DNA from: Selaginella moellendorffii
Lineage: Eukaryota > Plantae > Lycopodiophyta
DNA length: 64,000 nt
Assembly (NCBI RefSeq): GCF_000143415.4
Contig: NW_003314280.1
Coordinates: 248,001-312,000, forward strand
Reading direction: 5' to 3'
The position numbers were made by a program, and so were the translations under genes. Numbering within the stretch: position 1 is the first letter of the stretch; every line of letters starts with the position of its first letter. The notes beneath the pieces were generated by a model, which had not been told where the DNA came from, did no database searches, and saw only the letters and a list, made by a program, of their open reading frames with translations. This document shows positions 13,610 to 50,879 of this stretch, piece by piece.

Positions 13610-16373
13610 AGCGATGTAAAGAAAACGAGCAAATATCACGAACAAAAGCCGAGCTTTACCAAACGAACAGAACGCTAGATAGAACGAAACGAAGAAAGTT
13701 GCGCAGACAAAGGTGATGGATTGCGGGAAAATATATATGGCTTCGTCAGGTTGCTTCATATTCGCTTCCTTCGCGCCTTCCTCGAGCTTCGCTAAGCCGG
13801 CCGTTGTTTGAGCTAGGAATATTCTAAAAATATGCGAAAAGTATACACACACCTTTTTGCCTTTTCTCGTACCTGACAAAGCCATGGCTGGTAGTAGGAT
13901 TTTTTCCTTTCCTGCCTCGCAGCAGCCAAAGGCCATGGTAGCCGCGCAAGGCTAGCCGTGGCAAAGCTGGCCTTACCAGTGCGTGGAGCGCTCACAGGCG
14001 TCATGGCCGACCAGCGGGGCAGGAAAGAAGAACCTATACAAGGGCTGTGTGCTGAAGAGAGAAGCCGGATGGTGTGAATCCCCCCAGGCTGCCACAGCAC
14101 AGCCGGAATGGCTGTGGCATGCCAAAGTACACGCAAAATTCTATGTCCGCACCATTCGGCCAGCGAATGGTGACAGAAAAGATTGGCTCCACACCATTTG
14201 GCCGGCCTAATGGTTCAGGGAAAAGAATCAAATCCAACAGAAACTTTTTTTGCCTCGTCTTGGTGCCGAATGGTGGGGAAGGAAAGGTTTGAAAAACCAT
14301 TCATTTGCTGGAGGCGAGCATACTCGTTTGGATTTGGTTTGGAAAACAAAAGTTGTATAGTGATATATTTTTGGTTTGCTCAAGGGGAGTGGAATATGGT
14401 ATTTTTTTCCATCTAATAATTGATATTAAATAAGATTAATTTTGTGTTTAAAAAATATTAATATGTTTATAATTATAAACTTTGGATTAACAAATAGAAA
14501 TAACACTACTATTAAGCAAACATACATAAAATGCACAGCAAATTATTTTCATATTAATAAATTCATTATAAGTCTATATCCAAACATCAACTTACAAAGA
14601 TATAATATCATGCATTCTTGAAGGTGTTTATACAAGTAAATAAAGAAGTTAATGTCACTTAACAAGAATTACATAATTCTAAGTTCCTAGCAACTAAAAT
14701 CTATATACTTTTTAACTGGTATAACCACATTTGGAAACTAATAGAAAACTACATCCAACACCATAGTCACAATAAGCAAGAATATGAAACCATATAAATA
14801 TAATGAAAACTATATTTATAATAAAATATTGTTGACTAGTGCAAAAATATTACCTAAAAACTGATGAAACTTGATGTTAATTCACATGACAATAGCTCAT
14901 CTCATGTGAAAACCTTGAAACTTAAGAGGGAGAATTTGTGAGGAAACAAACTTAAGGTAAATTTTTTTTTTTCTTGAAAATTATGCTTTGGATCTCAGCT
15001 CATGGAGTAACAATGAGCATTGTCATAACACAAGGGATGTGGCATGAGGTAGATACTAAACAATTTCTAAAAGTTAATTTATAGTGGACAGAACTATACA
15101 TTTCCTATGCTTATGAGATGGATTTCTATGTTTCTTTAATGCTTTGTTGTAACGATTCTGGAGAGATGTTTGGTATGCTCAAAAGTACTATGATTACAAG
15201 CAATAGATTTTTTGATTGTCAAAGGTGTTTGGGAGATGATAGATATTTTATTTTTTACTTTTTAAATTTCATACTCAAATTGAATTTGTTGGTGAATTTT
15301 TTCTATTTCCACAAATGTCATATATATAAATCTGTTCGAGTGGCTACTAATTAAAGTGTTTTTTCTTCCTTATTTATTATCTTTGCAATGACAATGCAAG
15401 CATAAAGGATGATATCTCTTTTCCCTCTTCAAGTTTAAACCCATTCTCGAGGTGAGTAATTCGATTTTGGATTGGGTAGGTTGCTTGATTTATATTTTGT
15501 TCTCAGGTTTAGGTTTTCTAAAAGTGAGAAGAGAATGTTGATTGTACCAAAAGAGTGAAGTTAATAAGCTAGAATTCATGCAAAAAAACTAGAAAAAACA
15601 GTCACTCTGGCATAAAGGAAAAAAGGTTGGCTATACCTTCACCTCTACTTTTGTCCAAATTTTGCCTCATCGATGTAGAAGAAATATTTCCCAAATGAGA
15701 GTTTAGTACTTCACATGAACTTTGTATGTCGTCATTTGCCTAGCCCTGTGAGATGTTTGCGTACTCCTTTCCAGAAGTTTTATAATGTCGCTTTCAATTC
15801 TACTCATAATAAAAATGATAGAACGAGAACAAATGCTAGGAAAAAGAACCAGCGAGTAAAGGGATATCTTTTCTGTCTTGCCCGCTCTTCATCCATCCAC
15901 TTCTTCATCTTGTCCTTCAATGCCCTTCTGATTGTAGCAAAACAAGTAGATATCCATACAAGATATCTTGCAAACTAGTGATACAAACTCCTGAAACACA
16001 AACATTCAATCCTCAGCCAACTCCAACTCTACGTTCCTAACATTGGTCCCAGTCCTTGCGAATCTCCTCTGTCGTTGGAACTGGCCTTTGTAGATTGCTT
16101 GATGGAGAGGATAAACTTCCCCTTCTCCTCCACGTACCCTCCTGGCGGAAAACATTCACCATGGTGTGTACACTTTTTGCACAGTTCATTACAGACCAAT
16201 TTGACAAACTGGATCGGAAAGCATATCTGCCACAAAAACTCTATATTCAGGAGAGGGATGGTAGAGGTGATCGGCATCAAGAAAAAAACTTTGAAAAATC
16301 TTCTTAACAAACGCATAAAGACTTTTGTTGTAGAAGTTTGAATTTATGTATAGAAGTTTGTAACTATTTTAAT

Positions 16374-25865: not shown

Positions 25866-26673
25866 GTAACCTCAAAGGGCCCTTACAACCTTTTCTTGCT
25901 GGTGAGAAATATTTTTAGGATTATATGTATTGTAAAGCATATATATAGAATATTTAACTATATTTTAGAATATTCCTCAATTCAACCGTCTATAAAAGAA
26001 TTAGAGAAAAGTTTTTGTGTTTAAGTTTTTAGCTTAAAGCAAAAGTAAAATGGCACTTAGCCTCATGACTGTACTCTCTTGAAGGGTGTTAAATTTAAAT
26101 TGAGCCAGCCAAATCTGAATTCTTACTAATTGCAATCACACTAACTTAACATATGTGGGCAGGCTCCATCTATGGACCCATGTGCTAGATATTCATCCGA
26201 GAGCTCATGGATGTTTAGCAGCATATTCCATACAGATCTGAGGTCTTGGATCTCATAATCTGGCTTAATGTCTTCTAAGAAATTCGTATAGGATGGATCC
26301 TTCCCTATGACTCCAATAATTAACCATTCTAAGAATCCTTTATTGAGTGCATGAATCCAGCTATTTAGAAGTAATGGACCAGTAACTAAATTATTGAGTA
26401 ATCCCTTTGTGAAAACCCTTAAGGATTTTTTCTCCAGCTTAAGGTATTTTATAATGGTCACATTGCACATCATAGCATCAGAGCTCTTGATAGGGAAGCC
26501 CAAGGAATGGATTATGATTGAGATCCTAGAACTCAAGTGGGAGATGGCTTATCTTCCATTTTTGTGTTGCATGTCATTTTATTCATTTTTTAGAATCTTT
26601 GTCATTAAAAATTAAAATTTAGGGCGATGAAGCTAGCTTTAAGAACTCAAAAGTTGGTTAAATATTATCCTTT

Positions 26674-29600
26674 TGTGAGGTCTAAGTGTATAGTTATAAT
26701 GCCGTATATTAATATTAACATAGTGAGATTTTGATAGCTATCGGATTAGATTCAATCCGAACTATATAAATTAAGGTTTTTGAGCTAATTGATATACATA
26801 TTTTTTTATTTTATTTTTATATCTATACACTCACATTGGTGGAGTTGAGGGACAATTTTGATTGTCCCTAAAGAGTGTTTGGATTTGGGATTTTGGTTTA
26901 GATTTATATCTTTTTCAATTTCTTTTCTTTCATTTTTCCTTTTCATTCATCTTCATGGTAGAGTAACAACCTCTTCCTCTAACTCTAGAACAGTAGTTTA
27001 ATGCACAATTGCAATTGAACAATTATATTCAATTGATAATGGCATTCACAGTGCATAGTGCAACTTCTCTTACTCTTGTTATTAACCTTTGTGTCTGATT
27101 AGAATTCTTTTATGGGAATGATGTGTACTATTGATTTGATCACTTTACAGTGATTGTCACATATCATTCTTGGGATGATACTCAGTGTTTGTGTGAGTTT
27201 CCCACGTGTCTCCAAAAGACACCATTGCAATAGTATAATAGTTTAAGTGCAACCACTCATGCAAATTGGAGCATTCTCCTGGATCACTTCTTCCACTTTT
27301 TATTGCATATCGTTTAACTCCACTTCCTATAGGAGATAATTATGTTCCAATGGAGGTTGATATTTTTATTACCCAATATAGTGCACCCTATTTGTCTCTT
27401 CTTAAGCCAATTGAAAAAGTGGCAATTGTTTAATGAGAGAGCCCTTAATTACTATTTTATCCTCATTTATCCCGAAGGTTCTACGGTGATAGTATATCCA
27501 AATCTCATCCCATTATCATATACATTATACTACCCCCTCTTCAAATATGTGAATATCCTCATTGACTATTGACTAGCAACCTTTATTGAACAAAGGGGAA
27601 CCAATACCTCTATTTCCACACTAAAAATCTATCAATCATTTTATTGTGTAAACAAGTTATTTCATATGAAGTAACTAGTTATTCACTCATATCATAGTCC
27701 CACAGTGGCATCCACAAAATACTCATGGATGCCCAATACATATGATTTCAAATTTAGAAGTAAGAATATACTTTACTTAAAGGTATATTATATTTCTTCA
27801 ATACCATATGTAACACACCCTATCTCTCTCCCCTTAAGTCAACTAGAAAATGAGCAATTGTTTAATAAGAGAGTCTGTAGTGACTATTTTATCCTCATTT
27901 ATCCCCTAACATTTCAAGGATCTACAATAATAGTATATATTCAAATTTCATCCTATGATTACATGTGCTACACTTAAATTTAAGGATAAGGGTAAGGATG
28001 TGGTTGTGGCCATGATGTCATTTGTGATGAAGTTGGTCACACCTGTCGGCATTGTCAATGTTTTCTCGATTAGCAACTTCCATCTCTTATATGGAGATCT
28101 TGGCATTAACAACATTTTGTTGGTGCTATTTCAATAGAAGTTCTAGACACTAAGATGCTTTTATGAAACAAAGAGTCATGTGAGTAGTGGAGAGTTCTTG
28201 TATGAATAAGTTAATGACTCTTTCATTTTTTTTTGGAAATATCATTAAGGGGTTCACTTAGCACTAATTCATCCAGTGGTTACTTTCTAAATTCATTTTT
28301 ATAACGAATTTCCTATTATTCTCTCCGTGTTAGTTGATACAAATTTGAGTTTATTTTCTATTGCTCAAATTGTTGCCATATGTTGCTATCTACATTTGCA
28401 TCGTGCGATAGAGCCAATTTTCATTCTTTATGGAAACAGCCACACATATGCATATGTATGGGATGAGGCAAACCTATTTATTATTGAAGTAAAAAAAGTT
28501 TAAAAAAAGTAAATCGGTTCATTATTAAAGTAAAAAAACTTGGTTAGTCATATTACTTAGTAGGCTTTAAAGCTTCAAATATATGATTTCGGTATTATTT
28601 ATCACACAGGGAGTTATATACCTAATGCCTTTGATTTTTATTCCACACTTTTTCCACACCTACCATGATTCTCTTATTCTTAGCAGGCATATGGGATCAT
28701 ATGGGATATTATTATATGATTGAGAAGCTACACAAATCTTTCTATTAGTTAGAAATGCAATATGATGTTATCTGATATATACGTAGTCACGTTTGGTGCC
28801 AAACTCATATATTCCCATTCTTACTATGAAAGGATGATTGGAGTCAATTATAATTTCATATTCGTTTGAGTTTGTGACGTTTGATTTGATAGGGCTTTTT
28901 TTATGGCTGATTACTAGCAATGAATATGTCATTATTACTTCTGATTAATTAATTTGTTAGGTGGAAGTTGGTGCTCTTGATAGTGCATTTGCTATTGCTA
29001 TTAAATACTTCCTCCTCAATTAAATAATGTTTTAGCATTTCTGTCTAGAGCAAATTCTTTTAGATAATAGTCCCACATTTATAGCTAAGACATTTCATAT
29101 TTTAACATTTTGGTTTGGAATACACCACACTTTCCCAAGTGATTATCATCCATAGTTATATGGTTTGGTGGAATGGCTCATTTGTAATTTCAAAGGATGA
29201 TCATAAAATACATAAACTTTCAATATTCAGATTATAATGGTTATTTGCTATCTCTTTTATATGGGTGTAAAGTTCTATTAGTGCTTCACCATATAAATTG
29301 TTATATGATTATGATCCAATACTACCAACAAAGTTGAATTTACTTTTGCGACTGCCACAAGTTGCTGATGCTATATCTTGGGATCAATATTTTATGAACA
29401 TTCTTCCAAGTAGAGTTTACCAAACACCTAGGCCATATACAAATGGAACAACAATAATGTTATAACTCCCATCATTCTTTATCTGTGGAATTCAAAGGGG
29501 ATGACTTAGTATTAATTTATTTTCTCAATCTTACAGTATATGATTTATCTAAAGAACTCCTTCCTCAATGGAAGGGATTGTATTAGATGTTTGTGGTAAG

Positions 29601-29993
29601 TTAGACTTGAAATTTATGAGGTTTAGCATGATGTCTAACAAATGGATCCTCTAGAAATTGTGCATATATAATGGCTAAAATGTTTTGTACAAAAGGATCT
29701 TGAACAATTAACATCACCTATAGATTCACCAATGCCTCCTTTTGATATTTCTTTAAATTTTAGCTTATCCACCAAAGAACATTGACTATCTTTCATCCTT
29801 CCAAGAGATGGGAATGATGTGAGGTTCAAGTGTACAATTATAATGTTATATACTAATATTAGTGTAGTGGGATTTTAATAACCATTAAATTAATTTCAAT
29901 CTAGACCACTCTCTTTCTATTTATAAACTAAGGTTTTTAGGTTAATTTATATGCACATTTTTGTATTCTATTTCCATATTCCATGCATTCACA
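26674..29993 (+). mobile_element. Degenerate LTR retrotransposon with short LTRs (26674-26835, 29818-29993)
   Basis: Both LTRs run TGTGAGG...TCACA and align. PBS-like TGGTGGAGTTGAGG at 26837; purine tract before 29818; CTTT on both flanks; integrase relics (ASPYKLLYDYDPILP, PQWKG) at ~29280-29590. Confidence 0.8.
27377..27972 (-). mobile_element. TRIM-like miniature LTR element nested in the previous element
   Basis: Direct repeats 27377-27529 and 27809-27972 (TGTAAC...GCTACA). On the - strand a PBS-like TGGTATTGAAG and a PPT AAGAGGGGGTAG abut the repeats; ~280 bp non-coding interior. Confidence 0.65.
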
Positions 29994-31029
29994 CTTTTGT
30001 ACTTTCAAGTTTCAAATATTTAATAAAAATTAGGTACAAATGATTTTAAGAATTAATAAATATTCTTTACATCAAAGTAAACTGCAGGAAATTATTCTAG
30101 AATGGTTTGCAAGAAGTTTCTATAATATTTCTTTAGAATATTATATTCATAAACCTCGATTTTAAAATTTTCCTTTTAAAATATTATATATCACATATAT
30201 ACCTCACACCTAAGCTAGGCAATTAAGGGGTAGTTTTGGTTAGTTTATGTCATTCTTTCACACCATTGAGATCCTAGGCTCATAGTTCTACTTAAATTGA
30301 TTTTGCAGACAGAACACAAATTTGATCCTTGCAACAAATATGTGAATTTCCAGTAGGCTTGTCTACATAGACTGATGGCACAGAGAAATTGCAAATTAAT
30401 GATATTTTTGCATTGTCTAGAGTCAAGGTTTTGCTATTGGGTTCTTTGTGTGAAACCTTAGTCCATGCACTGGGCTTGGCCACAATGCAGAACATGTTGT
30501 CATCATGTATATATACCATAAGAACTGTTTCTAGATGCCAACATCTAGCAAAGCAAGCAACTTGTGGTTGTAAAGGAAACACACATCTTTTTCTACACAC
30601 ACTGTTTTTGACATTTGCTTCGTATGGCTAAATCATAAGACCTTGTGGTGGCATTATTGCTGGAATGATAGACCCTCCAGAACACAGAGGATAGTGACAT
30701 CTAGGCTCAGGTAGAGGTGGTACAAGAGGAGGCTAGGTAGTAGTGATCTCCATGTAGCTTGTGCTCTTTGCGGCTTGTGACAGCCAACCACCACCTCTGC
30801 CAGCATTTGCATCTAGGGCTACTTGCAAGTTGGACAACTCATGTAGATTTATTGATCTTGAGAAATCTTTGCTGAGATATGCTCCTCAATTGTCCTTAGC
30901 TGATGCTACACTACCAACCTACACTCCACACACTAGTGCCATCAAACAAGGAATCCCCCCACCCCAGCCAAAGATTCCCTTTAATCCCCTACTCCAGAAA
31001 AAAGGAAACCAAAACATTCTGACTTTCCA

Positions 31030-38555: not shown

Positions 38556-38629
38556 GTTCCACTAAAGACCATTTTAACAAGGACAAAGTGGTGGAGGAAG
38601 AGAGCCAATGGCACCGTCGTTTAGCCTAA

Positions 38630-38710
38630 GTTGAGATGGCCGAGCTGGTCTAAGGCGCCAGATTAAGGTTCTGGTCCGGAAGGGCGCGGGTTCGAATCCC
38701 GCTCTCAACA
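38630..38710 (+). tRNA. tRNA-Leu(AAG): tRNA-Leu (anticodon AAG)
   Basis: Acceptor stem GTTGAGA/TCTCAAC, anticodon arm CCAGA-TTAAGGT-TCTGG, long variable arm, GGTTCGAATCC T-loop. Confidence 0.97.
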
Positions 38711-38787
38711 ACTGTGTTCCTATAAATATGTGTACGAATTTCCTTTTAAGGCAGTTTCCTTTTACTTTGAGGTTTAGGGTATCAGCG

Positions 38788-40812
38788 ATGGATCCAGGCG
38801 TCATTGACGCGCTGGGCAAGAGTATGGCCACGCTTCTCGCAGTGGTAAGTAAAATGCCCTTGTAAACTTCTTGTTGCGATCCTTTTGTTTTCTTCTGTTG
38901 TTGATTCTTTTGTTTTCTTTTTTATTTTCCAGTCCCGCGACAACGATGGGGTGGATTTCCTAGCGGAGCTGCTGGGAGTTTTAGCGCGTGGGCACTTGTG
39001 CCAAGTGAGCTCGGACATGGAGACGATGGAGTCCATCGTAGAAAACCTGGTCGACTCCTTCTCGACGGGGTATTCAAATTTGAAGAAGAAACGCGGGGAT
39101 CAGAGCTCCTGTCCAGATGTCGACGGTCGGAGAGTCTCGGAACTGAAGAAGAAACGCGGGGATCAGAGCTCCAGTCCAGATGTCGACGATCGGAGAGTCT
39201 CGGAACTGAAGAAGAAACGCGGGGATCGGAGCTCCAATCCAGATGTCGACGAGCGGAGAGCGGAACTGAAGACGAAACGCGGGGATCCGAGCTTCAGTAG
39301 CAGTATCAGTATCTTTGCTGACAGAGAGCGGGAAAAGGAAAGGCAGCCACATCCCAACGTACGCCTTTCCTGCCGGAGTGGAAGCTTTCGTGCAGCTCGG
39401 GAAGCTGGAGACGGTCTGTCACTTCATGGAGTCGTGGAAGAAGCCGGATCTCAGGACGTTCTATCCATCGATGGTCTGAGTCTAAGTGACGAATGGGAGG
39501 ATGGATCGAGCAGTGAGGATCAGGTGACAGTAAAAGAAGGTGGCATGCATACGTGTGGAGCTTTCCAGCACTTGAGACGGGAGTTTATGAAAGCTTCCCA
39601 GCAATCAGGGGCTACAAGACCGCCGCAGATCATAGATCTGGAGAAAGCGCCGACCGTGGAGCCGGAGAAAAAGGTCACAGATACGAAGAAAGAGGTCACA
39701 GGTCCGGAAAAAGAGGTCGCAGATACGGAGGTAGAGGCCACAGATTCAGATTCAGAGTCAACCGTGGAAGGTGGATACGTAAAAGTGTTACAGCATGAAG
39801 TTGAGGAACTGGAGTACTTCGTGGAGGAAGAGGAAGACTCTGGTGGAACAGGAGAGCTTGTGACGTTTACTGTGGCGAGCAGCTGCGGCCGCCTCGGACC
39901 GGCGTCGAGGCCTATCTCGCACGCGTTGTCACTTCGACAACAGACGCTGATCGAGCAAAGGCGAAGCAACTCTCTCAAGGAAATGGAGCTCGTCTGTGCG
40001 ATGAAGGGCTTGCAGCTCAAGGAGCGAGAGCTGGACATGCAAGTCGAAGCGATCGACATCGGCAGGGAGACGCTGGACGTGAACAGGAGCACGCTCAAGT
40101 TCAATGTTTCCAAGGCTGAACGAGACGCCGTGGCCGCCGACTGTGCCGACTTTCGGAGCTCCACGTCCGACTACTTCGTCGCGGGCTTGCTGATCATGTT
40201 CGGGTTCACGGGGTATTGCGTGTGGAAGAATCTTCCGGAGTGGTTTAAAACGCTGAGCAGCTCGTGTGCTGCAACACCTACAGTCACTAAAAAGGTTTGT
40301 AAGCTTTTCTCCTCTCTTTGTTGGCTTTGATTCACATTCGTTTCCTTTGCCAGGCATGGTACCATTGGAACTTCGTTGGATCGATAACAAGTAACACCGG
40401 CTACTTGCTTTGCATCGCCAGGGGGTGTGCTGGAGGGATTGTTGGACTGCTGCTGTGCGTGCTCCTCCTCTTCGTCTGCAAGAAGACGCTCAGCTCCTCC
40501 AAGAACGCAATGCCGATGACTATCTTCTTGGTGGGGGGCTCCTTCATCGGCTTGGTCGGGAGAGCGATCATCGACCTCTTGGGGGGACAGGGATGGAACT
40601 GGATGGTGGTGTGGCTACTCTCGTGCGTGCTCCATGCCTGCACGCACTTCTTCACCGAGTTCTTCGTCAAGCTCCTCAGCAGGAGCAGAATTGCGGCGAT
40701 CTTGTTCCATGTATGTTTGGCGGTGGGATTGCCGCTCGGGGCTGGGCTAGCAGGATTTCCATCAGCCTTTCCATCGCTGAAGTTTTTTTTAGCGGGGCCT
40801 GCAAAGGTTTGA
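38788..40812 (+). CDS. CPR5: CPR5-like membrane nucleoporin / immune regulator (exons 38788-38844, 38933-40294, 40354-40812)
   Basis: EQRRSNSLKEMEL..MKGLQLKERELD coiled coil; C-terminal TM region MPMTIFL..GRAIIDLLGGQGWNWMVVW. Confidence 0.8.
39080..39295 (+). repeat. Coding tandem repeat, 63-bp unit, ~3.5 copies (LKKKRGDQSSxPDVDxRRVSE)
   Basis: Units start at 39080, 39143, 39206 and 39263. Confidence 0.95.
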
Positions 40813-40929
40813 AGGGATTTTGATCGAAATCCCAGCAACCTTTGCTAATTTATAATATATCTTTTGTTCTTTCAACACTTGAAAAAGAAAGCTAGCTCGA
40901 GCTGGAGAAGGAAAGAAGCCCTAAGCAAA

Positions 40930-41688
40930 ATGGAAGGGCGCCTGGATTTGCTGATTGATCTGGATGATACCCTGGTGTCCATCGGCGACGACATCAAGGT
41001 TCCTGTCAAGGCGCTGGTCGGCTCATACAAGTTCGCTCACGGTGCGTTGGAATTCGTCGTAGCTCTGGCCAGGATTCCTGGGACAAGAATCGGTTTCTAC
41101 AGCTGCGGCTCCAAGCAGCGCAACGAGAACCTCATGGAGAAGCTCGCGGTTGCCCTCGAGGAAGAGCTGGGATTCAAGATGAGCGAGGAGATGGTGGTGT
41201 ACAGCGTGACCCGCGGAAACAAGAAAACGCTCCAGGGGCTGAGGGAGGGGCTGGATCTGGAGAGAACCATCCTGGTGGACGATGCCGGCAGGAACTCGGA
41301 GGCGGGCGAGGTGAGGAACTTGCTCAAGATCTATCACAGGAAGCGGCTGTACGATGAAGAGGGCAAGCTTTGCAAAGGTGGCAAAGTCTTCAAGGCCAGG
41401 ATCGCCAACAATCTCGTCCGCGCTCTCGGCCTCATCGTCAAGTCGATCCGATCCTCCTCTTCCGCCGTCACGGTGGTGCAAGCGCTGGAGTCGCTCCAGT
41501 GGAACGGGGACGAGTATCTCCACGACACGAGCAACTCGGAGGAGATTTACCAGCTGGGTGTGGAGGCCATGAGAAGCGTGAGGCCGGACTTTGGCATCAA
41601 AGAGGTGGTGAGCTCGGTTCATCCTTGGTCGCCACACGAGAGTAACGAGGAGCTCTTCCCAAGTTCACGCAACCAGATCCTCCTATAA
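40930..41688 (+). CDS. Intronless HAD-superfamily (FCP1/NIF-like) phosphatase
   Basis: Motif I LLIDLDDTLV, motif II IGFYSCG, lysine in GNKKTL, motif IV LERTILVDD. Confidence 0.75.
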   Translation: MEGRLDLLIDLDDTLVSIGDDIKVPVKALVGSYKFAHGALEFVVALARIPGTRIGFYSCGSKQRNENLMEKLAVALEEELGFKMSEEMVVYSVTRGNKKTLQGLREGLDLERTILVDDAGRNSEAGEVRNLLKIYHRKRLYDEEGKLCKGGKVFKARIANNLVRALGLIVKSIRSSSSAVTVVQALESLQWNGDEYLHDTSNSEEIYQLGVEAMRSVRPDFGIKEVVSSVHPWSPHESNEELFPSSRNQILL

Positions 41689-41830
41689 ACCCATTTTAAA
41701 TTTCTGGTTTCTCTAGTGCAAGGTTTCTTTGATCGCTACTAGGGGGATTTTCTTTTCTATCCAATGTCACTGCAATCTGGGCCGTCCGATTTGAAAATTT
41801 TGTCCAATCTCGGCCGTTGGCCGCAGGATT

Positions 41831-44800
41831 ATGCTATCACAGGCGGCTCAAGGCGCGATGGAGGCCTCGTGGCATGAGTTGGCGGCGCTCGGCGGCGGAG
41901 GAGGCCATCGCCACCAGCATTGCCAGCGCCCCCTCATCGCCGCCACTCCGATTTTTTTCGTGCCTCGTTGCCACGTCCAAAGGTCAGCCTCCAGGGTTTT
42001 AGGGGTTTTGGATCGGTCGCTTGGAGGAACGAAATGCTTTTCATGCTTTCATGGATATTTCTATCGAAATGTAGGTCCGCTATGTGATATTTTGATGTGT
42101 GTTTTTTTTTGTCTTGCCAGGAAGCTAAGGATTGTTTGCTCTGTCTCGGAATCGGTGTGTAGAAAATTTTCCTTTGGAGTTTTGATATTTTCTTACGATG
42201 TTTTGCTTGCGTAGTTTTCTCCCAGCACTGCGACAGCTCTTCAATCAAAGAAAGCGTTGAGCAATTCAGTAAGCATTTACGACACTACACTACGAGATGG
42301 CGCTCAGGTGAGGTCGTTAAATTTTCGTCCTTGACTGGAAACTCCACAGTGTTTTTTCTTTAGATGGTGGGAATTTCCTTGACTCTAAATGACAAGCTAA
42401 AGATTGCTAAAGCTCTCGCGGACATTGGTGAGTTCCGTGGCTATTTCTCACTCGATGCAGTACGTTGAGATAGTTGTATGTGTTAAGGTGTGGATTATAT
42501 CGAGGGAGGATGGCCCGGATCAAATCCAAAAGACGCAGAGTTTTTCAAGCTTTGTAAGGACAACATTCTGAAGGGGCAGTCCTCGAAGCTTGCGGCATTT
42601 GGTTCGACTAGAAGGAAAAACTCGACTTGCGAAGAGGTTTGCTCGCCAAAATTGCGTGGACTCTGAAATTCTGATTGCTTGGACAGGATACTAACGTGCA
42701 AGCATTACTCTTTAGCGAGGCAGAGGTTATCACGGTGGTAGCAAAGGTGAGTAGAACCTTCTTCGTTCTTTTCGCGCCCGAGTGGTCTCACATATTTGAT
42801 ATGGTCAGGCGTGGGACGTACAGGTGACAAGAGTACTCGAAACAACACTAGCAGAAAACTTGAGAATGGTCGCGGAAACTATTTCGTATTTTAAGGTGAG
42901 AAACTTCGGCCTGCAGTTGTTGATTCCTCCGTTCACACATGTATTAAGAACAATCTCAGGTCCGAAGCAAGGAGGTAATGCTTGACGCTGAGCATTTTTT
43001 TGATGGTTTTACAGCAAACAGGTACCACGCTTTTCTGTTAACAATCGTTGCTAAGCGCTCGTACTTTTTCACCAGAGCTTACTCGCTAGAGTGCTTGAAA
43101 ATTGCGGTGAAGGCTGGAGTTGATGTAGTCGTCTTGTGCGACACCAATGGAGGGTCCATGCCCTGGACTGTAGAGGTATCCATCTTTTCGGCTAGTTGAA
43201 AAGGAGTTCTCACTTCTCCCTGGAACAAATAAACATCACAGGAGGTGACAAGAACTGTTAAAGCAGAGTTGATGCCCTGGCCACATGTCCGTATAGGAGT
43301 ACACACACACAACGACACGGAACTCGCTGTTGCCAATTCTCTGGCAGCTGTGCGAGGTGGGGCATCGCTAGTTCAAGGATGCGTCAATGGCTACGGGGAG
43401 CGAACTGGAAATGCAAATCTGGCACGTATGCTCTTGGAACTTGTACTTGAAAATACTAAGCTATTTTGTGCCGTTGTTCGCAGATTAGCGTGATCGGCGG
43501 GCTTCAAGTCAAGATGGGATTTACGTGTATCCCTCCCGAATCTCTTGCAAATCTTTCCAAGCTGGCGTCCACTGTCGCGGACGTTACAAAGCAGACAATG
43601 TCACCAACGCAACCGTACGTTGGCTCGGCGGCCTTCGCTCACAAAGGTGGAATCCATGTTGCGGCGATACGCAGGGTGAGAAAATCATCTTCCTTTCTTC
43701 TCGAAAGAAAAGTTTAAGAAACACGCGTATTGCCGTACAGATGCCCGAGAGCTATAATCATATGGATCCGACTCTCGTTGGAAATGCCATGCGTTCAGTC
43801 GTGAGTGAGCTATCTGGCAAAGGCAATATACTTGATAAGGTTAGCAAGCAACAAGTTTTTCATTAGTCGTTTTAACAATCTGAGAGCTCTCAGGCTGAAA
43901 AAGCTGGACTTGTTTTGGACAACGATGTCGCCGGAAGTGTTCTTGCGCACATAAAACAAATGGAAAGAGAGGTACGCAAGTTTTTTCACAGCTTTTACTC
44001 TCATCTTTAACAGAGTTTGAGTTGCAGGGATGTGCTTTTGAAAACGCTGGTGCCTCTGTTGATATGCTGATTGTTCGAAAGGGAAAGCGCTACCAGCAGC
44101 CGTAAGGATCTACTGACAAATTCATTCTGAGTGACTTTCTTCCTCGCAGCTTTCAAGTCTTGGAATTCACGGTGCTTTCGAGCAACCGCGGCGTGCATTC
44201 CACTAGTAGCAACGGGAACTCGCAGATCCAACAAGATAACTGGCTCGCGTGGTGTGGAAGTGACAGTCAAGTGAACCAGGCGATGGTAAAGCTCTCCGTC
44301 GGTGGCAAAAGTCAGGTATGCATACAACTTGTACAAAAGCATGAACTTGAAAGATTTGCTCTTCCGGCTCAGGTAAGCGCAGCGGAAGGGATCGGTCCAG
44401 TGGATGCTCTCAGTCACGCTTTAAGGTGGAGAATTCTCGATCGATCGCATACTTGCAACTTACATTGTCCTGCTCGTGATTCCAGGAGCGCGCTCGAGAA
44501 GCACTACCCGCAACTCGAGCAAGTGGAGCTCGCGGACTATCACGTCCATCTAGTGGAGCCATCGACTGCTCACAAGGGGACCCTTTCAACGACGCGAGTG
44601 ACAGTTGACTTCACGGATGCTTCTGGCAACAAGTGGACGACCGTGAGTCTCATTCAAACGCAAGTGTTCTTCATTGTTTATGCTCAATCACTTTCATTGT
44701 TCCCAGGTTGGTGCTCACACATCCATCGTAGAAGCCAGCTTCCGGGCGCTCGTTGACGGCCTCGAATTTGGGATCGTCAATTGCTCCGAGGTACCAAAGC

Positions 44801-44893
44801 TCGATCAAAGTTTTTAGTTTTCTTCTTCTTTGTGCTTTGTCCAAACGCCGATGTTTTTCACAGGATGGCTGTTCTGCCGTTCACAAAAAGTAA
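41831..44893 (+). CDS. cimA: Bacterial-type citramalate synthase / alpha-IPM synthase family protein (CimA-like), multi-exon, probable transit peptide
   Basis: [92 protein letters not shown] and a C-terminal regulatory domain. The 5' exons are uncertain. Confidence 0.85.
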
Positions 44894-45345
44894 AACGATG
44901 CGTTCTAGGCTATTTGAGCAACTGCTTGGAATGTTCCCAGGTTTTTGGATTTGGCCATGGTCCAAAATCCACGTAAAGGCCCAAATATTGTACTGTAATT
45001 AGGGCTTGTCTTATTTCTGAGAGGGTTTCTGGTCGCCTCGCCTCGCCAGTGGATCGAGGCGCCGTGGCGCTGCCATCGAATTCTCGCCTCGCCCGCGAGC
45101 TATGGAGCTGGATCAGTGATTGACGATGAGGAGGAGCTGGAATCGCAGCGCCGGAAGTCGCCATTGCAAAGGAGCGCAGGATGCTAGACTTGTGGTGGCT
45201 GCTTGGGGGACGAGCTCGCTCTCCAGCTGAGGACGAGAACGGTGAGTGAGCCCCTTTTTCTAAATTTCCTCTCTTTGCGATTGCATTGTATCTTTAGAAC
45301 TCTATCCGCGATGCTTATTTATTAAAATTCTTAACCCAGACAACG

Positions 45346-48300
45346 ATGTCGGACGTGTCAGCTTTGCTCCAGGCGTCCGTGTTGCGAAATCTCTCGGACA
45401 AGCTCTACGAGAAGCGAAAGATCGCTGCTCTTGAGGTGAGATTGTATCCCTTTTCCTTCCTTTAAAATTTAACAATAGATTGTTCATCAGGTGGAAGGGG
45501 TCCTGAAATCTCTAGTTAGTTCCGGCGACCATGAGAAGATATCCTCCGTCATATCGATATTAATCAATGACTATGCTCTATCGCCACAAGCCAATCACCG
45601 AAAGGTATGTGAGAGTGAGACGACCGCTTTTTCTTAGTTTTTTCTCTTATGCCAGGGGGGGCTGATTGGATTGGCGGCTGCTACTGTTGGCTTGGCCTCC
45701 GAGTCTGCCCAGTATCTTGATGTAAGTATTGAGTTCTTCTCCCTTGCGATATAGAACGAAAGAAGTTGTTTTCTTTTTTTTTTGCTCAAAGGAATGACTA
45801 TTTTGCAGAGAATTGTTCCGCCTGTTTTGATTTCTTTCACGGATCAAGACAGTCGGGTGCGATATTACGCATGTGAGGCACTTTACAACATAGCAAAGGT
45901 ACATCTTACTTTTCATCATGAGGTTTCTGTGCTTGGAGCTAACTCAGGGTAGGTATCTAGGTGTCGAGAGGTGACTTAATTGTTTTCTTCAACAAAATAT
46001 TCGATGCCCTTTGCAAGCTCTCGGCGGATTCAGATCCTAATGTTCAAAGTGCAGCTCATCTTCTGGATCGTCTTGTCAAGGTAATTTCGTCAATCTCTTA
46101 ATTTCTTATAATTTCTTAAGAGAACTCATTTCTTTTATTTTTTGATATTTTTTTATGCTCAGGATATTGTGACGGAAAGTGATCAATTCAGGTAGTCAAA
46201 ACGCTTTGGTTCTTGGCTAAATGTTTTCTGCTCAGCATTGAAGAATTTATTCCGCTATTGAGGGAGCGAATGAACGTGCTCAATCCGTTTGTCCGACAAT
46301 TTCTCGTGGGATGGATCACTGTATTGGACAGCGTCCCGGACATTGATATGCTGGAGTTCTTGCCAGACTTTCTCGACGGTAACATCATAGTCGACTCTTT
46401 AGTTTTGTAACCCTTTGCATGTAGGTCTGTTCAACATGCTTAGCGACAACAGTCACGAGATCAGGCAGCAAGCCGACTCTGCATTGTCCGAGTTTTTGCA
46501 AGAAATTAAGAATGCTCCTGTAAGCCTTTTGTTTTTAAAACGCATTATCATTCTTGACCGTGAGTTTTTAAATATTTAGTCCGTGGATTACGTTCGCATG
46601 GCTGCGATACTTGTACAAAGAGCTAGATCACCTGATGAGTTCACTCGTCTAACATCCATAACATGGGTATGAAACGTCAATCGTTTCTTTAGTAGTTACT
46701 TAAAAATATTTCAGATGAGCGAATTTGTGAAACTTGGAGGGGATCAGCTTGTGACATTCTATGCGGAGATTTTGGGTGCCATTCTACCAGCAATCTCTGA
46801 CAAGGAAGAAAAAATCAGAGCAGTAAGATTGAGCTCTTTAACTAAACATAATACGCTAAAAACATTTGATTATAAGGTTGCTCGTGAAACAAACGAAGAG
46901 CTTCGAGCCATTCGTGCTGAACCAGTTGAAGTGATAGACATTGGATCAGTTCTGAATGCAGCTAGACGGTAATCTTTCTCGTTTCTAAAAACTTGGACTT
47001 GAACAAAATAGTTGTGTAGGGAGTTGGGAAGCGAGTTTGAAGCCACAAGATTGGAAGCCTTGCGGTGGATGCTTGTTCTTCTTGAGAGACATAGAACAGA
47101 GGTACTTGGAGTTTTCTTTTCTGTACAGTAGTTGCTAACATTTTAACAGGTTCTATCGTTTCTTGACGAAATATTTCCTGCATTGCTTCAGTCTTTGTCG
47201 GACGAATCTGATGATGTAAGCATTTGCATTTGTTTTTGTATGTTTGTCACCTAAAATGTATCTGTTAACAGGTTGTGTTGCTGGTTCTGGAGGTTCAAGC
47301 TTGTATAGCACGGGATACACAACAATTTCGGCGTTTGATGGTCTTTCTTGTACATAAATTTCAAATGGACAATCTTCTGCTTGAAAGGTACTTTACGAAG
47401 TCAATAGTTAAACAGTCTTCGTGACCAGCATTAAATTTTCAGGAGAGGAACCTTAGCGTTGCGACGTCTCTGCGTCCTTCTTGACGCCGAGACTGTATAC
47501 AGAGAGTTGGCAACTATCCTGGAAGGCGAGGCGGACTTAGAATTTGCAACCGTTATGGTCCAGGTATCAGTATCTAGTTTGCGTTCTCAGCGAACTTATG
47601 CATGTACACTTACAGGCACTTAATTTAATTCTCCTCACGGCTTCAGAACTTGCCGATTTAAGGGCACTGCTAAAGGAGTCGTTGACAAATTCGCAAGGAA
47701 AAGATCTTTTTGTTGCTCTGTATTCATCGTGGTGTCACTCGCCGATGGCTACTGTTAGCTTGTGCTTACTTGCTCAGGTAATGTCCTGTCCAACTTCTTG
47801 TTCCAAAACACATGATTATGCTTTGCAGGCTTACCACCATGCAAGCGCAGTTATCCAATCTCTCGGGGAGTCGGACATCAACGTCAAGTTTCTAGTTCAG
47901 GTGGATAAGCTGGTACGGCTTTTGGAAACTCCAATCTTCGGTTACTTGAGGTTGCAGGTAATCGTTTTACTACCACTTGGCCATTTTCTAACGCTTGTGT
48001 ATGACAGTTGCTAGAACCAGCGCGCTATCCCTCGTTGCTGAAGACGCTCTACGGGCTGCTCATGCTACTCCCTCAGGTGGGTACAGAAAATGAATTCTGG
48101 CAAACTGATCATGATTGGCATTCGATTTAATGCATGCAGTTTGATGATGCAGCAAAGCTCTGCATTCAAGATATTGCGAACGAGACTGAAGACCATCCCG
48201 GCGTACGCTCCCATGCACATCCAAGCAACACCGGCGGCCGAGCTTGCTGGACTGAATGCAGGGCGTAGATCCGTATCGGCAGTACCGTACCTGGCTCACT

Positions 48301-48603
48301 ATCCAACTGGAGACGACGGGGACAAGGTGTCCGACTTCAACAGCGGGCCCGGTGGAATCAACTTCACGATGAGGTTGCAGCAATTTGAGCTGATGCAACA
48401 CCAGCACAGGCTCCACCGCCAAGCAGTGCAGTCGCAGCTCTCCAAGCCACCAAAGAAGCCTGCGTCTCAGGTGAGAAATCTTCATCCCGTTGGTGGTGAT
48501 GTTTTCCTCACTTTCGCTTTCCTTGTGCTGCGTCCAGGGCGATGATGCGCGAGGAAAATCTTCCAAGCTTGGGCTTTCTCCGTCCAACTGGAGATCTTCC
48601 TAA
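45346..48603 (+). CDS. VAC14: VAC14 homolog (PI(3,5)P2 regulatory scaffold), multi-exon
   Basis: [66 protein letters not shown]. Confidence 0.96.
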
Positions 48604-48797
48604 GGTTATTTTCTTTGTGTCTGTCTGTTTATAGAGATGCTACATAGCCATTCACATTCTTGCAGAATCTGTGTATAGAGAGTTTTCATACTTTTCTATT
48701 GATAAAGTTCTTTCTCGCACTTATCTAGCTCGTGTTTCCATTAGAACCTTAGGTCTCCTCAGGAAGGGTGATACCGCGTATGGAAGCGAGCGCGAGC

Positions 48798-50833
48798 ATG
48801 GCCAATGCATCATCTCTCCTGTAAAGATTTCCTTCTTTTCCTTGCAAATTGATTCATTGGTTTTGCAGCTCGTCTTCTCTCCCGACCAAGCGTAGAGCTT
48901 CCGCATTGGGTTCTGGGTAAGTGCTGAAAACTCCCGTGTATGCGTATGGTTCTACTAGTTTCCAGAACAAGCGGTAATACAGGGGCGTGGTATCAAGTAC
49001 CCGAGCTCAACCTTCGCGATCATCGTTTCGAAGTTCCTCTCAATTATGCTGCTCCTTCCGACTCGACAATCTCAGTCTTCGCTCGAGAAGTCGTCTCAGG
49101 TAAAAACATATCAGCTCTGGATCTCAAAATGAGAAACTTACAATACAGTTGGAAACGAGGAGAAAGACCTGCCATTTTTGCTCTTCTTGCAAGGGGGTCC
49201 CGGATTTGAATCCCTTCGTCCGCTGGAGTGCAGTGGATGGCTGAAAAGAGCTTGCGAGGACTTTCGAGTCATCCTTCTAGATCAGGTTTCATTCATTTTA
49301 TTCCTGTGTGTTTGATATCTCTTTCAGCGAGGAACTGGGCTTTCTACCGCCTTGACTGTTGGATCGCTGAACCAACTTTCGAGCCCCCAGGCACAGGCAT
49401 CCTACCTCCAGCATTTTCGAGCAGATAACATCGTCAGAGACGCGGAGATGATTCGAAAGAGCCTTGTGCCACACGGAGAGCCTTGGACTCTCCTTGGTCA
49501 GGTAAAGCTCTCGCTTTTTAAACACTTGCAACGCCAACCTTGAAATGATTTTCCTATCCAGAGCTATGGTGGTTTCTGTGCCGTTACTTATCTAAGCATG
49601 GCACCATCCGGCCTGGAGCAAGTGCTACTCACGGGCGGTCTTCCTCCTATTGACGCTGGATGCACTGCCGAGGCCGTGTATCGTGCTTGCTACAAGCGTG
49701 TCCTGCTCCAAAACATGAAGTTTTACCAGCGTTTCCCTCGGGATGAAGAGCTCGTCCGGGAGATTGTTTTACACTTGGCAAGTAGCGAAGGTGGAGGGGT
49801 GAGTCGATCTTTTCTTGCCATTTATATTTATATAAAGTGTGTGATAGGTGCTTCTTCCATCTGGTGGCAAGCTCACACCAAGGAGCTTTCAGTTGCTTGG
49901 CTTGACAGGATTGGGATCACACTCTGGCTTTGAAAAGCTTCACTTCACGTGAGCGCTGCGCTTTTCGTTTTCCTTCTTTTCTTTATGTTTTCTTCCTTCA
50001 GTCACTCTAATTTATTTTTCTTTTATTTCCTTTAGGTTGGAGCGAGCATGGGATCCTGTTCTTGTACCTGGCATTAGCAAGCAGCTTAGCTACACATTTC
50101 TTCGAGCGGTAATCAGCCTTTTGTCTCAAAACGCTTTTTGTTTTAACACTACTTCATGTATAGTTTGAGAACTGGCTGGATTTCGATACAAATCCTTTAT
50201 ATGCACTGATGCACGAGCCTATCTACTGCCAGGTAGGTCGGGCAAATGCAGTTCTCCGGAGGTGCCAATAGCGTGATGTTGTCATGCTTCAGGGTGCGGC
50301 ATCAAACTGGGCAGCACAAAGAGTAAGAGATGAACTGGGTGAGCAGTTTGATCCGGTCTTTGCTGCAAACCATAGCGAGCCCGTTCTTTTCACGGGAGAG
50401 GTATGATTGGTCTTCTTCTGCTGATTTCCTCGCGAACACTGGTCTCAGATGGTGTATCCATGGATCTTTGACGAGATAAAACCGTTGCATCCTCTAAAGG
50501 AGGCTGCAAACCTCCTAGCTGAGAAACAAGATTGGCCAGTTCTCTACAACCATGAGGTTTTACGCTCTAACAAGGTGCACTTTTTCTTTTCTCTTTTCTC
50601 CTTTTGCGCAAAAGACATTCTTTGGCTGTGTCGTTCAGGTGCCCGTCGCAGCAGCGGTGTATTACGAAGACATGTACGTAAATGTGAACTTGTCAGAGGC
50701 GACGGCTGCGTCCATACCAGGAATAAGGCTGTGGATCACTAACGAGTTCATGCACTCTGGACTCCGTGAAGATGGCTATCGAGTCTTGGATCATCTCCTT
50801 GCGATGCTAAAAGGAAAGAGACTGCTTCGATGA
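48798..50833 (+). CDS. PIP: Proline iminopeptidase (alpha/beta hydrolase), multi-exon
   Basis: LRDHRFEVPLNY, LQGGPGFE, HFRADNIVRDAE, nucleophile GQ/SYGG, YYEDMYV, TNEFMHSGLR. Confidence 0.93.
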
Positions 50834-50879
50834 CTTTCCTTTAAACATTCGAAATTCCTTTATTGTTTAGTGAGTTCCA

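Follow-up and report, generated by a model that had tools for sequence, protein, structure and literature searches.

Isoleucine synthesis in plants is taught and modelled as starting from threonine deaminase. The locus described here lies in a window of 64,000 nucleotides from Selaginella moellendorffii, and it raises the question of whether part of the plant kingdom also holds a bacterial-type enzyme that would enter the same pathway from pyruvate. The first-pass annotation, made from the sequence alone, had placed an intron-rich gene for a CimA-like citramalate synthase at positions 41831-44893 of this window. Our overall reading, which we consider probable though well short of certain, is that the gene is the allele, on one S. 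moellendorffii haplotype, of an ancient citramalate synthase of the TIGR00977 clade, whose product would convert plastid pyruvate and acetyl-CoA to citramalate and hence supply isoleucine; the substrate, the localization and the pathway role are the deduced parts of this reading.

Structure and transcription of the gene

The exon model was drafted by hand from the sequence and then fixed with spliced transcript contigs, which were taken from four runs of four studies and placed on window positions 41600-45100. It gives a CimA-type gene of 19 exons and 628 codons on the forward strand (41858-44893), whose 18 introns measure 48-138 nt and whose frame stays open up to the TAA stop codon at 44891-44893. 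Fifteen of the 18 splice joints are seen directly in spliced contigs from the four studies, and the remaining three are consistent with contig arithmetic and with the alignment to the RefSeq protein P0153, which needs no gaps. The model aligns to P0153 with no gaps at 98.9% and to SELMODRAFT_97271 (P0161) with zero mismatches, and a single contig of 2026 nt covers the whole mRNA. The transcribed region extends on the forward strand from about 41797 (5' UTR; contigs start at 41797 and 41801) to about 44980 (3' UTR; depth ends in the bin 44876-44992), both ends being approximate. The location given in the first-pass annotation is borne out by the contigs and the translation, but its start is not. 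The ATG at 41831 is in frame and specific to the window allele; as a shared start it was rejected, being absent from the other haplotype and from one transcript contig, and the shared RefSeq start is the ATG at 41858.

All exons lie on the forward strand. Exon 1 (41858-41982) opens with the start codon common to both haplotypes, at which P0153 also starts, and begins an N-terminal extension. Exon 2 (42121-42154) is a mini-exon of 34 nt, whose joints 41982/42121 and 42154/42215 are present in all four runs; when exon 1 was joined straight to 42215 or 42226 the frame was lost, and the mini-exon seen in the contigs fixes it. The extension ends in exon 3 (42215-42307), which carries the catalytic Arg-Asp within a ten-residue motif and is backed by contigs, translation and profile, and exon 4 (42364-42427) follows from contig arithmetic and the gap-free P0153 match. 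Exon 5 (42488-42636) has TIGR00977 as its sole NCBIfam match (E 1.6e-12), as does exon 7 (42809-42895), where the contigs give the joints; exon 6 (42687-42746), between them, is supported by contigs and translation. Exon 8 (42960-43021; contigs, profile and translation) and exon 9 (43076-43175; contigs and profile) carry DAEHFFDG and LCDTNGG, respectively. Exon 10 (43242-43421), given by contigs and profile, holds the metal-binding histidines of HTHND and another ten-residue motif, and matches the HMGL-like domain with an E value of 3.9e-18. It is separated from exon 11 (43484-43675; contigs and profile) by a GC-AG intron (43422-43483), which has the only non-GT donor of the gene (GCACGT). The joint 43421/43484 occurs in all four runs, and exons 10 and 11 adjoin seamlessly on TIGR00977. 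A GT donor at 43426 was rejected, since it brings a stop codon into the frame, and contigs and profile alignment alike give the GC-AG intron.

The contigs further define exon 12 (43741-43839; also by profile), exon 13 (43894-43971) and exon 14 (44028-44101). A LeuA_dimer regulatory domain starts in exon 15 (44150-44315; contigs), which also contains an insertion of about 28 residues (approximately 44187-44270). Contigs likewise place exon 16 (44373-44425), exon 17 (44486-44642; also by profile) and exon 18 (44707-44790). Exon 19 (44864-44893), given by contigs, translation and alignment, encodes a Cys-containing tail that is conserved in streptophyte homologs, and then the TAA.

The window represents one S. 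moellendorffii haplotype, with SELMODRAFT_97271 as its allele, and the allele of the other haplotype is LOC9643899. There is one CimA-type gene per haplotype. The haplotypes are collinear (window 38621-50879 with GL377626.1, 97.6% identity), Vac14 is the downstream neighbor on both, and transcript contigs carry variants from both alleles. The two proteins are 98.9% identical; between the alleles dN is 0.0049 and dS is 0.035 (dN/dS 0.14), and intron divergence is also 0.035. The gene is under purifying selection.

Outside plants, the best relatives of the gene are bacterial, and one explanation to be weighed is that bacterial DNA contaminates the assembly or that Selaginella received the gene recently. 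This explanation is refuted. The gene's 18 spliceosomal introns are spliced out of its transcripts, and on each of the two haplotype scaffolds it has the same eukaryotic neighbors, Vac14 among them; moreover, some of its intron positions are common to Klebsormidium, and in a tree that matches plant phylogeny Selaginella is sister to ferns within the streptophyte clade (see below). The first-pass annotation had argued against contamination on the strength of the introns and the N-terminal extension, and was right to do so. The CimA-type gene is genuine, intact, transcribed and nuclear.

Family membership and protein features

Whole-protein profile scores were taken from two public proteins, P0161 (window allele, partial) and P0153 (other allele, full length), and the exons of the window allele were scanned singly against NCBIfam (n = 10). 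The alignment, the tree and the dN/dS estimate used the window allele's protein model joined from all 19 exons. The citramalate-synthase equivalog TIGR00977 scores 573.2 bits with P0161 and 595 bits with P0153, against a cut-off of 450, and the profile is matched at positions 1-522 of 526. Of the 10 exons scanned, 9 have it as their top or sole NCBIfam match; these matches are colinear along the profile, sum to 320 bits and are far beyond chance. In the same scan, the first short exon was slightly higher on isopropylmalate synthase (IPMS) models (E ~0.005), and one exon was without a match. We take the TIGR00977 clade to be the citramalate synthase of the type of Geobacter sulfurreducens GSU1798, for which the experimental paper is reportedly that of Risso and co-workers from 2008. 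The GSU1798 work is cited in PMC3150298 and PMC7826400.

Could the likeness to CimA be superficial, and the protein be an IPMS of the leucine pathway or a homocitrate synthase? Such enzymes share its superfamily and its three-domain layout, relatives bear the JGI pipeline name '2-isopropylmalate synthase', and the best match among solved structures is a homocitrate synthase. Nevertheless, we regard this as very improbable, as every such model falls far under its cut-off. For IPMS the scores are 219.8 against 598.7 (TIGR00973), 234.1 against 532 (NF002086) and 288.1 against 517 (NF002085), and TIGR00970 is absent from the families of P0153 at E up to 1e-20; for homocitrate synthase they are 217.9 against 413.55 (TIGR02146) and 195.4 against 462.9 (TIGR02660). 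Solved chains of IPMS, MAM and homocitrate synthase have 16-30% identity to the Selaginella protein, and in the tree E. coli LeuA is set apart by a branch length of 9.3. Two other models are also under cut-off, namely the Leptospira-type CimA NF042433 (138.7 against 950) and the archaeal LEU1_arch TIGR02090 (214.9 against 484.75).

The motifs point in the same direction as the profiles. The four that the first-pass annotation had quoted are all present in the translation: a ten-residue motif at 42502-42531 and AFGSTRRK at 42592-42615 (both in exon 5), DAEHFFDG at 42984-43007 and AHKGGIH at 43637-43657 (exon 11). The window translation also carries the clade signature, made up of the Arg-Asp of LRDG, DAEH, DTNGG, HxHND, NGYGERxGNA and HKGGxH, and it keeps all 62 alignment columns in which 40 eukaryotic and bacterial members show no variation, including HxH, DAEH, DTNGG and HKGGxH. 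The IPMS motifs EAGFP and H-x-S-G-I-H-Q-D are absent, the window having segments of 11 and 10 residues instead. At the aligned places the solved IPMS chains 3EEG and 3RMJ read EAGFP/EAGFA and HSSGIHQDG/HESGIHQDG, which agrees with the motif contrast drawn in the first-pass annotation.

The protein is built of three parts, that is, an HMGL-like TIM-barrel catalytic domain, a linker (post-HMGL) subdomain and a C-terminal regulatory/dimerization domain of LeuA type; on P0153, Pfam reports HMGL-like, HCS_D2 and LeuA_dimer (PF00682, PF22617 and PF08502). The AlphaFold model has the family fold (pLDDT 89.9, pTM 0.84). In the PDB, a solved structure for the TIGR00977 clade was not found, and the best match, the homocitrate synthase mentioned above, has 30% identity. 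Taken at the level of sequence, the evidence supports the assignment of the Selaginella protein to the bacterial TIGR00977 citramalate-synthase clade, and the CimA family named in the first-pass annotation is upheld by the scores of P0161 and P0153 above the TIGR00977 cut-off, the distance to the IPMS models and the position inside the bacterial CimA radiation in the trees.

Some features are specific to the eukaryotic proteins. In the alignment, eukaryotic homologs have N-terminal extensions of 60-100 residues (about 70 in Selaginella) that are absent in bacterial ones, and the Selaginella extension is most likely a plastid transit peptide. As a presequence it is not of the textbook transit-peptide kind. 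Beside the catalytic Arg-Asp, the eukaryotic clade reads DGAQMVG where the bacterial one reads DGTQGEG. The regulatory-domain insertion of about 28 residues is found in eukaryotic homologs only and is predicted to be disordered (pLDDT 51-66). The DGAQMVG substitution or the insertion could accompany a changed substrate or regulation.

Distribution and origin

Orthologs occur in ferns, in streptophyte algae and prasinophytes (Spirogloea, Closterium, Mesotaenium, Klebsormidium, Chlorokybus, Mesostigma, Pyramimonas and Bathycoccus), and in the red alga Rhodochaete. Among 5.8 billion proteins searched, zero from seed plants or bryophytes ranked above the bacterial matches. Seed plants thus appear, from these searches, to be without a bacterial-type citramalate synthase, in keeping with the earlier remark that the gene is not typical of them. 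Exon 11 alone, searched against representatives at 50% identity, gave a best identity of 64%, with the full-length relative P0004 among the returns, and a fold search of the ESM Atlas returned no further taxa. Databases name some of the relatives automatically, and JGI pipelines call relatives '2-isopropylmalate synthase'. A literature search found no paper on a plant gene for bacterial-type citramalate synthase, the only plant citramalate synthase found being the IPMS-derived enzyme of apple.

Trees were built from a 69-row set (careful search; ultrafast bootstrap/SH-aLRT) and from a 103-row set that includes long branches. In the 69-row tree the eukaryotes form a clade (96/96), within which the green lineage (100/99), the streptophytes (95/94) and Selaginella with ferns (99/90) are recovered. 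The bacterial enzymes among which the Selaginella gene is nested carry the annotation citramalate synthase, and E. coli LeuA falls outside; a phylogeny was the check proposed in the first-pass annotation, and it sets the gene among bacterial CimA and away from LeuA. Klebsormidium has introns at Selaginella positions in 7 of 9 cases. These shared introns and the agreement between gene tree and species tree mean that the gene is ancient and has been inherited vertically.

As for the donor, the first-pass annotation had left the choice between an endosymbiotic and a horizontal origin, and this can now be narrowed. The nearest bacterial relatives are, by sequence comparison, Anaerolineae (Chloroflexota) and not cyanobacteria. 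In the 69-row tree eukaryotes and Anaerolineae group together (100/99; SH-aLRT 98 in another tree), and cyanobacteria form a separate clade (100/100). Endosymbiotic gene transfer from the cyanobacterial ancestor of the plastid, as opposed to a gift from another bacterium, is in our judgment improbable, yet it has points in its favor: TIGR00977 enzymes occur in cyanobacteria, the gene is found among eukaryotes in plastid-bearing lineages only, and a cyanobacterial sister survives the AU test (p 0.18) with the 103 rows that include long branches. With 69 rows, on the other hand, the AU test rejects a clade of eukaryotes and cyanobacteria (log-likelihood difference 95, p 0.0001), and both trees put the eukaryotes sister to the Anaerolineae group, at a distance from the cyanobacterial clade. 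Furthermore, the Selaginella protein is 52-55% identical to Anaerolineae as against 41-45% to ten cyanobacterial rows, and no cyanobacterium is among the best 120 matches of a streptophyte query. Under the preferred Anaerolineae-related origin, the gene would have been acquired, earlier than the diversification of the green lineage and probably also earlier than the parting of greens and reds, from a bacterium whose closest living relatives are Anaerolineae; it would then have passed vertically into lycophytes and ferns, and the seed plants searched do not have it.

Possible pathway role and comparison with known systems

In the mechanism that we propose, a plastid enzyme would condense pyruvate with acetyl-CoA to (R)-citramalate, the isomerase and dehydrogenase of the leucine pathway already in plants would turn citramalate into 2-oxobutyrate, and this would feed isoleucine synthesis without threonine deaminase. 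Spikemoss, algae and ferns probably have, judging from the genes they carry, such a second route from pyruvate to isoleucine, a role that the first-pass annotation had likewise offered as an inference. Plants also have threonine deaminase, so the citramalate route would be redundant. In Cyanothece, which has no threonine ammonia-lyase, isoleucine synthesis by way of citramalate is documented (PMC3487460).

The threonine deaminase route is also the first argument for a different role, in which this CimA-family condensing enzyme would mainly serve something other than isoleucine, either with citramalate as the end product (organic-acid pool or exudate) or through 2-oxo-acid chain elongation for specialized metabolites. 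The unrelated, IPMS-derived citramalate synthase of apple partly supplies ester precursors (PMC7826400), and the eukaryotic substitutions beside the catalytic Arg-Asp and the regulatory-domain insertion lend themselves to the same argument. Against this, the gene is single-copy per haplotype and has been kept under purifying selection from prasinophytes and a red alga to ferns, which fits core metabolism better than lineage-specific chemistry, and it retains a regulatory domain typical of feedback-controlled amino-acid enzymes. We consider a main role outside isoleucine synthesis unlikely, if the least so of the alternatives weighed here. The broader proposal built on the isoleucine role is put forward tentatively, as somewhat less than an even chance: a threonine-independent plastid route would operate in red and green algae, lycophytes and ferns, with a Chloroflexota-like donor and not the endosymbiont, and would later have been lost in seed plants and apparently in bryophytes.

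If this proposal is true, the textbook single route of plant isoleucine synthesis is valid for part of the plant kingdom only, and algae, lycophytes and ferns can start isoleucine from pyruvate as well, with feedback control of a different kind. Algal metabolic models would then need correcting; for example, one diatom model lists citramalate as requiring a foreign cimA (PMC7563145). It would also mean a datable gene loss on the path to seed plants, and another plastid-pathway gene with closest bacterial relatives other than cyanobacteria. If the enzyme is active, it offers a plant-adapted CimA for engineering products derived from 2-oxobutyrate.

The Selaginella gene is a further member of a known citramalate synthase family, and it is for the plant gene itself that no paper was found. 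Its nearest counterparts are the bacterial TIGR00977 enzymes (the type of GSU1798, also in Cyanothece and many Chloroflexota), with which it shares the equivalog model, the three-domain layout, the sequence motifs and the presumed reaction. It differs from them in being nuclear, with 18 introns, and in its N-terminal extension of about 70 residues, the disordered insertion of about 28 residues, the conserved Cys-containing C-terminal tail and DGAQMVG in place of DGTQGEG. The CimA enzymes of Leptospira interrogans (LiCMS, PDB 3BLE) and of methanogens (Methanocaldococcus) have in common with it the superfamily, the presumed reaction and pathway role and a C-terminal regulatory domain; however, Leptospira CimA belongs to another clade (NF042433 139 bits against 950; PDB sequence match E 1e-19; 23-24% identity in structural alignment). 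Plant IPMS, MAM and apple MdCMS are, like the Selaginella protein, plant Claisen-condensing DRE-TIM enzymes, although its identity to Brassica MAM1 is 24-25%. MdCMS makes citramalate that feeds isoleucine and esters (PMC7826400). Whereas MdCMS arose recently from plant IPMS and has lost the regulatory region, the Selaginella gene represents a separate, bacterial-type lineage that keeps its regulatory domain.

Gene structure and alleles

As delimited by spliced transcript contigs, the transcribed region of the CimA-type gene, the candidate citramalate synthase gene, extends on the + strand from window position 41797 to about 44980. Its exons were first drawn from three-frame translation and GT/AG sites, and the model was then checked against contigs of four public runs (four studies) over 41600-45100. 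The contigs are spliced: 15 of the 18 joints are listed directly, and the contig piece lengths exactly accommodate the three that are not displayed; one contig of 2026 nt spans the whole mRNA. The resulting model comprises 19 exons separated by 18 introns (48-138 nt); its open frame closes, on translation, with a TAA stop codon at 44891-44893 (+), and the full-length RefSeq protein P0153 aligns to the model gap-free. A 34-nt exon (42121-42154, +) absent from the sequence-only model came to light through the contigs, as did a GC-AG intron with the donor GCACGT (43422-43483, +), which is the sole non-canonical intron of the gene and was spliced in all four runs.

The first-pass annotation had begun the gene at the ATG at 41831, a placement that was not upheld: this ATG is absent from one transcript contig and from the other haplotype, where a 3-nt deletion removes it. 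The start common to both haplotypes is the ATG at 41858, giving 628 codons, while 41831-41857 carries an in-frame upstream ATG only in the window haplotype. If the latter were used, nine N-terminal residues would separate the two alleles.

The model matches SELMODRAFT_97271 (P0161), an older partial NCBI model, with zero mismatches, and P0153 ('uncharacterized protein LOC9643899 [Selaginella moellendorffii]') at 98.9% identity. The coding locus of P0153 lies on scaffold GL377626.1 of assembly GCA_000143415.2, and window 38621-50879 is collinear with it at 97.6% identity across coding and non-coding DNA. Because of this collinearity, and because a Vac14 gene is the downstream neighbour at both loci, the window gene and the P0153 gene are two haplotypes of a single locus. 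They are separated by 22 differences over 1887 coding positions, which change seven amino acids (dN 0.0049, dS 0.035, dN/dS 0.14); intron divergence is 0.035, and the transcript contigs contain variants of both alleles.

The Vac14 (Fab1/PIKfyve scaffold) gene occupies about 45100-48500 (+), and one 3238-nt contig (run X7) extends into it from the 3' exons of the CimA-type gene. Directly upstream of the latter lies an intronless ORF of 274 codons (40864-41688, +) with a weak match to NLI-interacting-factor (CTD-like) phosphatases (E 5.7e-4, just under the Pfam cut-off), and a separate transcript contig terminates at 41782. Further off, 14001-16000 and 26001-30000 have a G+C content of 0.31-0.34, against 0.45-0.55 elsewhere in the window, and may be repeats or transposon remnants.

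Enzyme family and proposed role

In single-exon scans, TIGR00977 ('citramalate synthase') was the best or only NCBIfam match for nine of ten exons, with matches colinear along the profile; for the first short exon, 2-isopropylmalate synthase (IPMS) models were slightly ahead (E ~0.005), and one scanned exon had no match. The whole public proteins of the two alleles scored 573 and 595 bits against TIGR00977, whose curated cut-off is 450, and all IPMS, homocitrate-synthase, archaeal and Leptospira-CimA models fell far under cut-off for them. The Pfam domains are HMGL-like, HCS_D2 and LeuA_dimer. All 62 columns invariant over 40 eukaryotic and bacterial members are retained in the Selaginella protein, including the metal-binding HxH, DAEH, DTNGG, NGYGERxGNA and HKGGxH. 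The four motifs quoted in the first-pass annotation were all found in the translation, and the IPMS motifs that it had named were seen in aligned solved IPMS chains; the Selaginella protein has the CimA-clade motifs in their place. A confident AlphaFold model (pLDDT 89.9, pTM 0.84), derived from the family alignment, displays a TIM barrel, a linker subdomain and a regulatory domain.

Judged by its family, the enzyme would condense pyruvate and acetyl-CoA to (R)-citramalate, with a divalent metal probably coordinated by the LRDG Asp and both His of HTHND. The bacterial and archaeal pathway continues with isopropylmalate isomerase and dehydrogenase, both of which are also present in plant plastids; they turn citramalate into 2-oxobutyrate, where isoleucine synthesis is entered. 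Cyanothece, which is without threonine ammonia-lyase, depends on the citramalate route (PMC3487460).

All eukaryotic homologues carry 60-100 additional N-terminal residues that bacterial ones do not have in the alignment, and a similar R-I-(V/C)-C-S stretch closes both the fern and the Selaginella extensions; we read the extension as a putative plastid transit peptide. Retention of the LeuA_dimer domain suggests feedback control, and within it the eukaryotic members have an insertion of about 28 residues that is predicted to be disordered (pLDDT 51-66). Streptophyte homologues have in common a conserved Cys-containing C-terminal tail, which might, as pure speculation, serve in redox chemistry or metal binding. 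This tail, N-C-x-x-(D/E/S)-G-C, falls in the last 10 columns of the alignment (window 44864-44890); bacterial enzymes are without it, and Pyramimonas has it in part.

Distribution and origin

When P0004, a full-length Spirogloea relative, was searched by word index against 5.8 billion proteins, the matches ranked over all bacteria came from Selaginella, three ferns (Adiantum, Ceratopteris and Pteridium), the algae Klebsormidium, Closterium, Chlorokybus, Mesotaenium and Mesostigma and, by cluster membership, the prasinophyte Pyramimonas. No seed-plant or bryophyte protein stood over the bacterial matches in this search; the databases covered include proteomes of both groups, which means that an orthologue at least 55% identical would have ranked there. 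Rhodochaete, a red alga, and a large marine clade including Bathycoccus prasinos came from a further search. As a lead only, ESM Atlas clusters are dominated by Streptophyta, Chlorophyta and Bacillariophyta. An intronless CimA-type gene of 572 residues (L083, 3001-4719; GCA_001564335.1, LFIK01005891.1) adjoins an importin/exportin-like gene; its cluster (P0168/P0169) falls within the green-lineage clade beside the Pyramimonas group and streptophytes, in a branching order that is not settled.

Two trees were built: one of 103 rows including long branches (quick search, outgroup E. coli LeuA), and one of 69 rows with long branches left out (careful search, LG+C20+F+G4 PMSF). In the latter (ultrafast bootstrap/SH-aLRT), support was 96/96 for eukaryote monophyly, 100/99 for the green lineage, 95/94 for streptophytes and 99/90 for Selaginella with ferns. 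Because the gene tree tracks the organismal tree, the gene has descended vertically. Seven of nine Klebsormidium introns share aligned positions with Selaginella introns; the chance expectation for a position to lie no more than one residue from a Selaginella intron is about 8%.

The first-pass annotation had left the origin as endosymbiotic or horizontal. In the 69-row tree, an Anaerolineae group is sister to the eukaryotes (100/99), nested among other Chloroflexota, Acidobacteriota and Pseudomonadota, and cyanobacteria, drawn from one query and with Gloeomargarita absent, form a separate clade (100/100). Constraining eukaryotes with cyanobacteria cost 95 log-likelihood units and was rejected (p-AU 0.0001), whereas with the long branches included (103 rows) it cost 32 units and was not (p 0.18). 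Given the Anaerolineae sister group, the separate cyanobacterial clade and these split tests, an ancient acquisition of the gene from a Chloroflexota-like bacterium appears considerably more probable than a cyanobacterial endosymbiotic origin.

Naming and comparison with known enzymes

The Klebsormidium and Adiantum proteins bear the automatic UniRef name '(R)-citramalate synthase', the Selaginella protein is 'uncharacterized' at NCBI, and relatives are '2-isopropylmalate synthase' in JGI pipelines. A full-text literature search found no paper pairing 'citramalate synthase' with Selaginella, and the enzyme is unmentioned in the top-ranked literature on streptophytes, ferns and algae. A genome-scale model of Thalassiosira pseudonana treats citramalate as non-native, requiring a foreign cimA (PMC7563145); in contrast, the ESM Atlas holds a diatom-dominated '(R)-citramalate synthase' cluster of 165 members, and the enzyme may already be native to diatoms.

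Apple citramalate synthase is IPMS-derived, and a bacterial-type plant gene is not mentioned in that work (PMC7826400). PDB sequence and fold searches returned no solved structure from the TIGR00977-type clade; the best match by both is Sulfolobus homocitrate synthase, at 30% identity, and the Leptospira CimA (LiCMS) differs further, with 23-24% identity to the Selaginella protein. The Selaginella gene is not a new kind of system; it adds an unstudied new member, in an unexpected set of hosts, to a known enzyme family.
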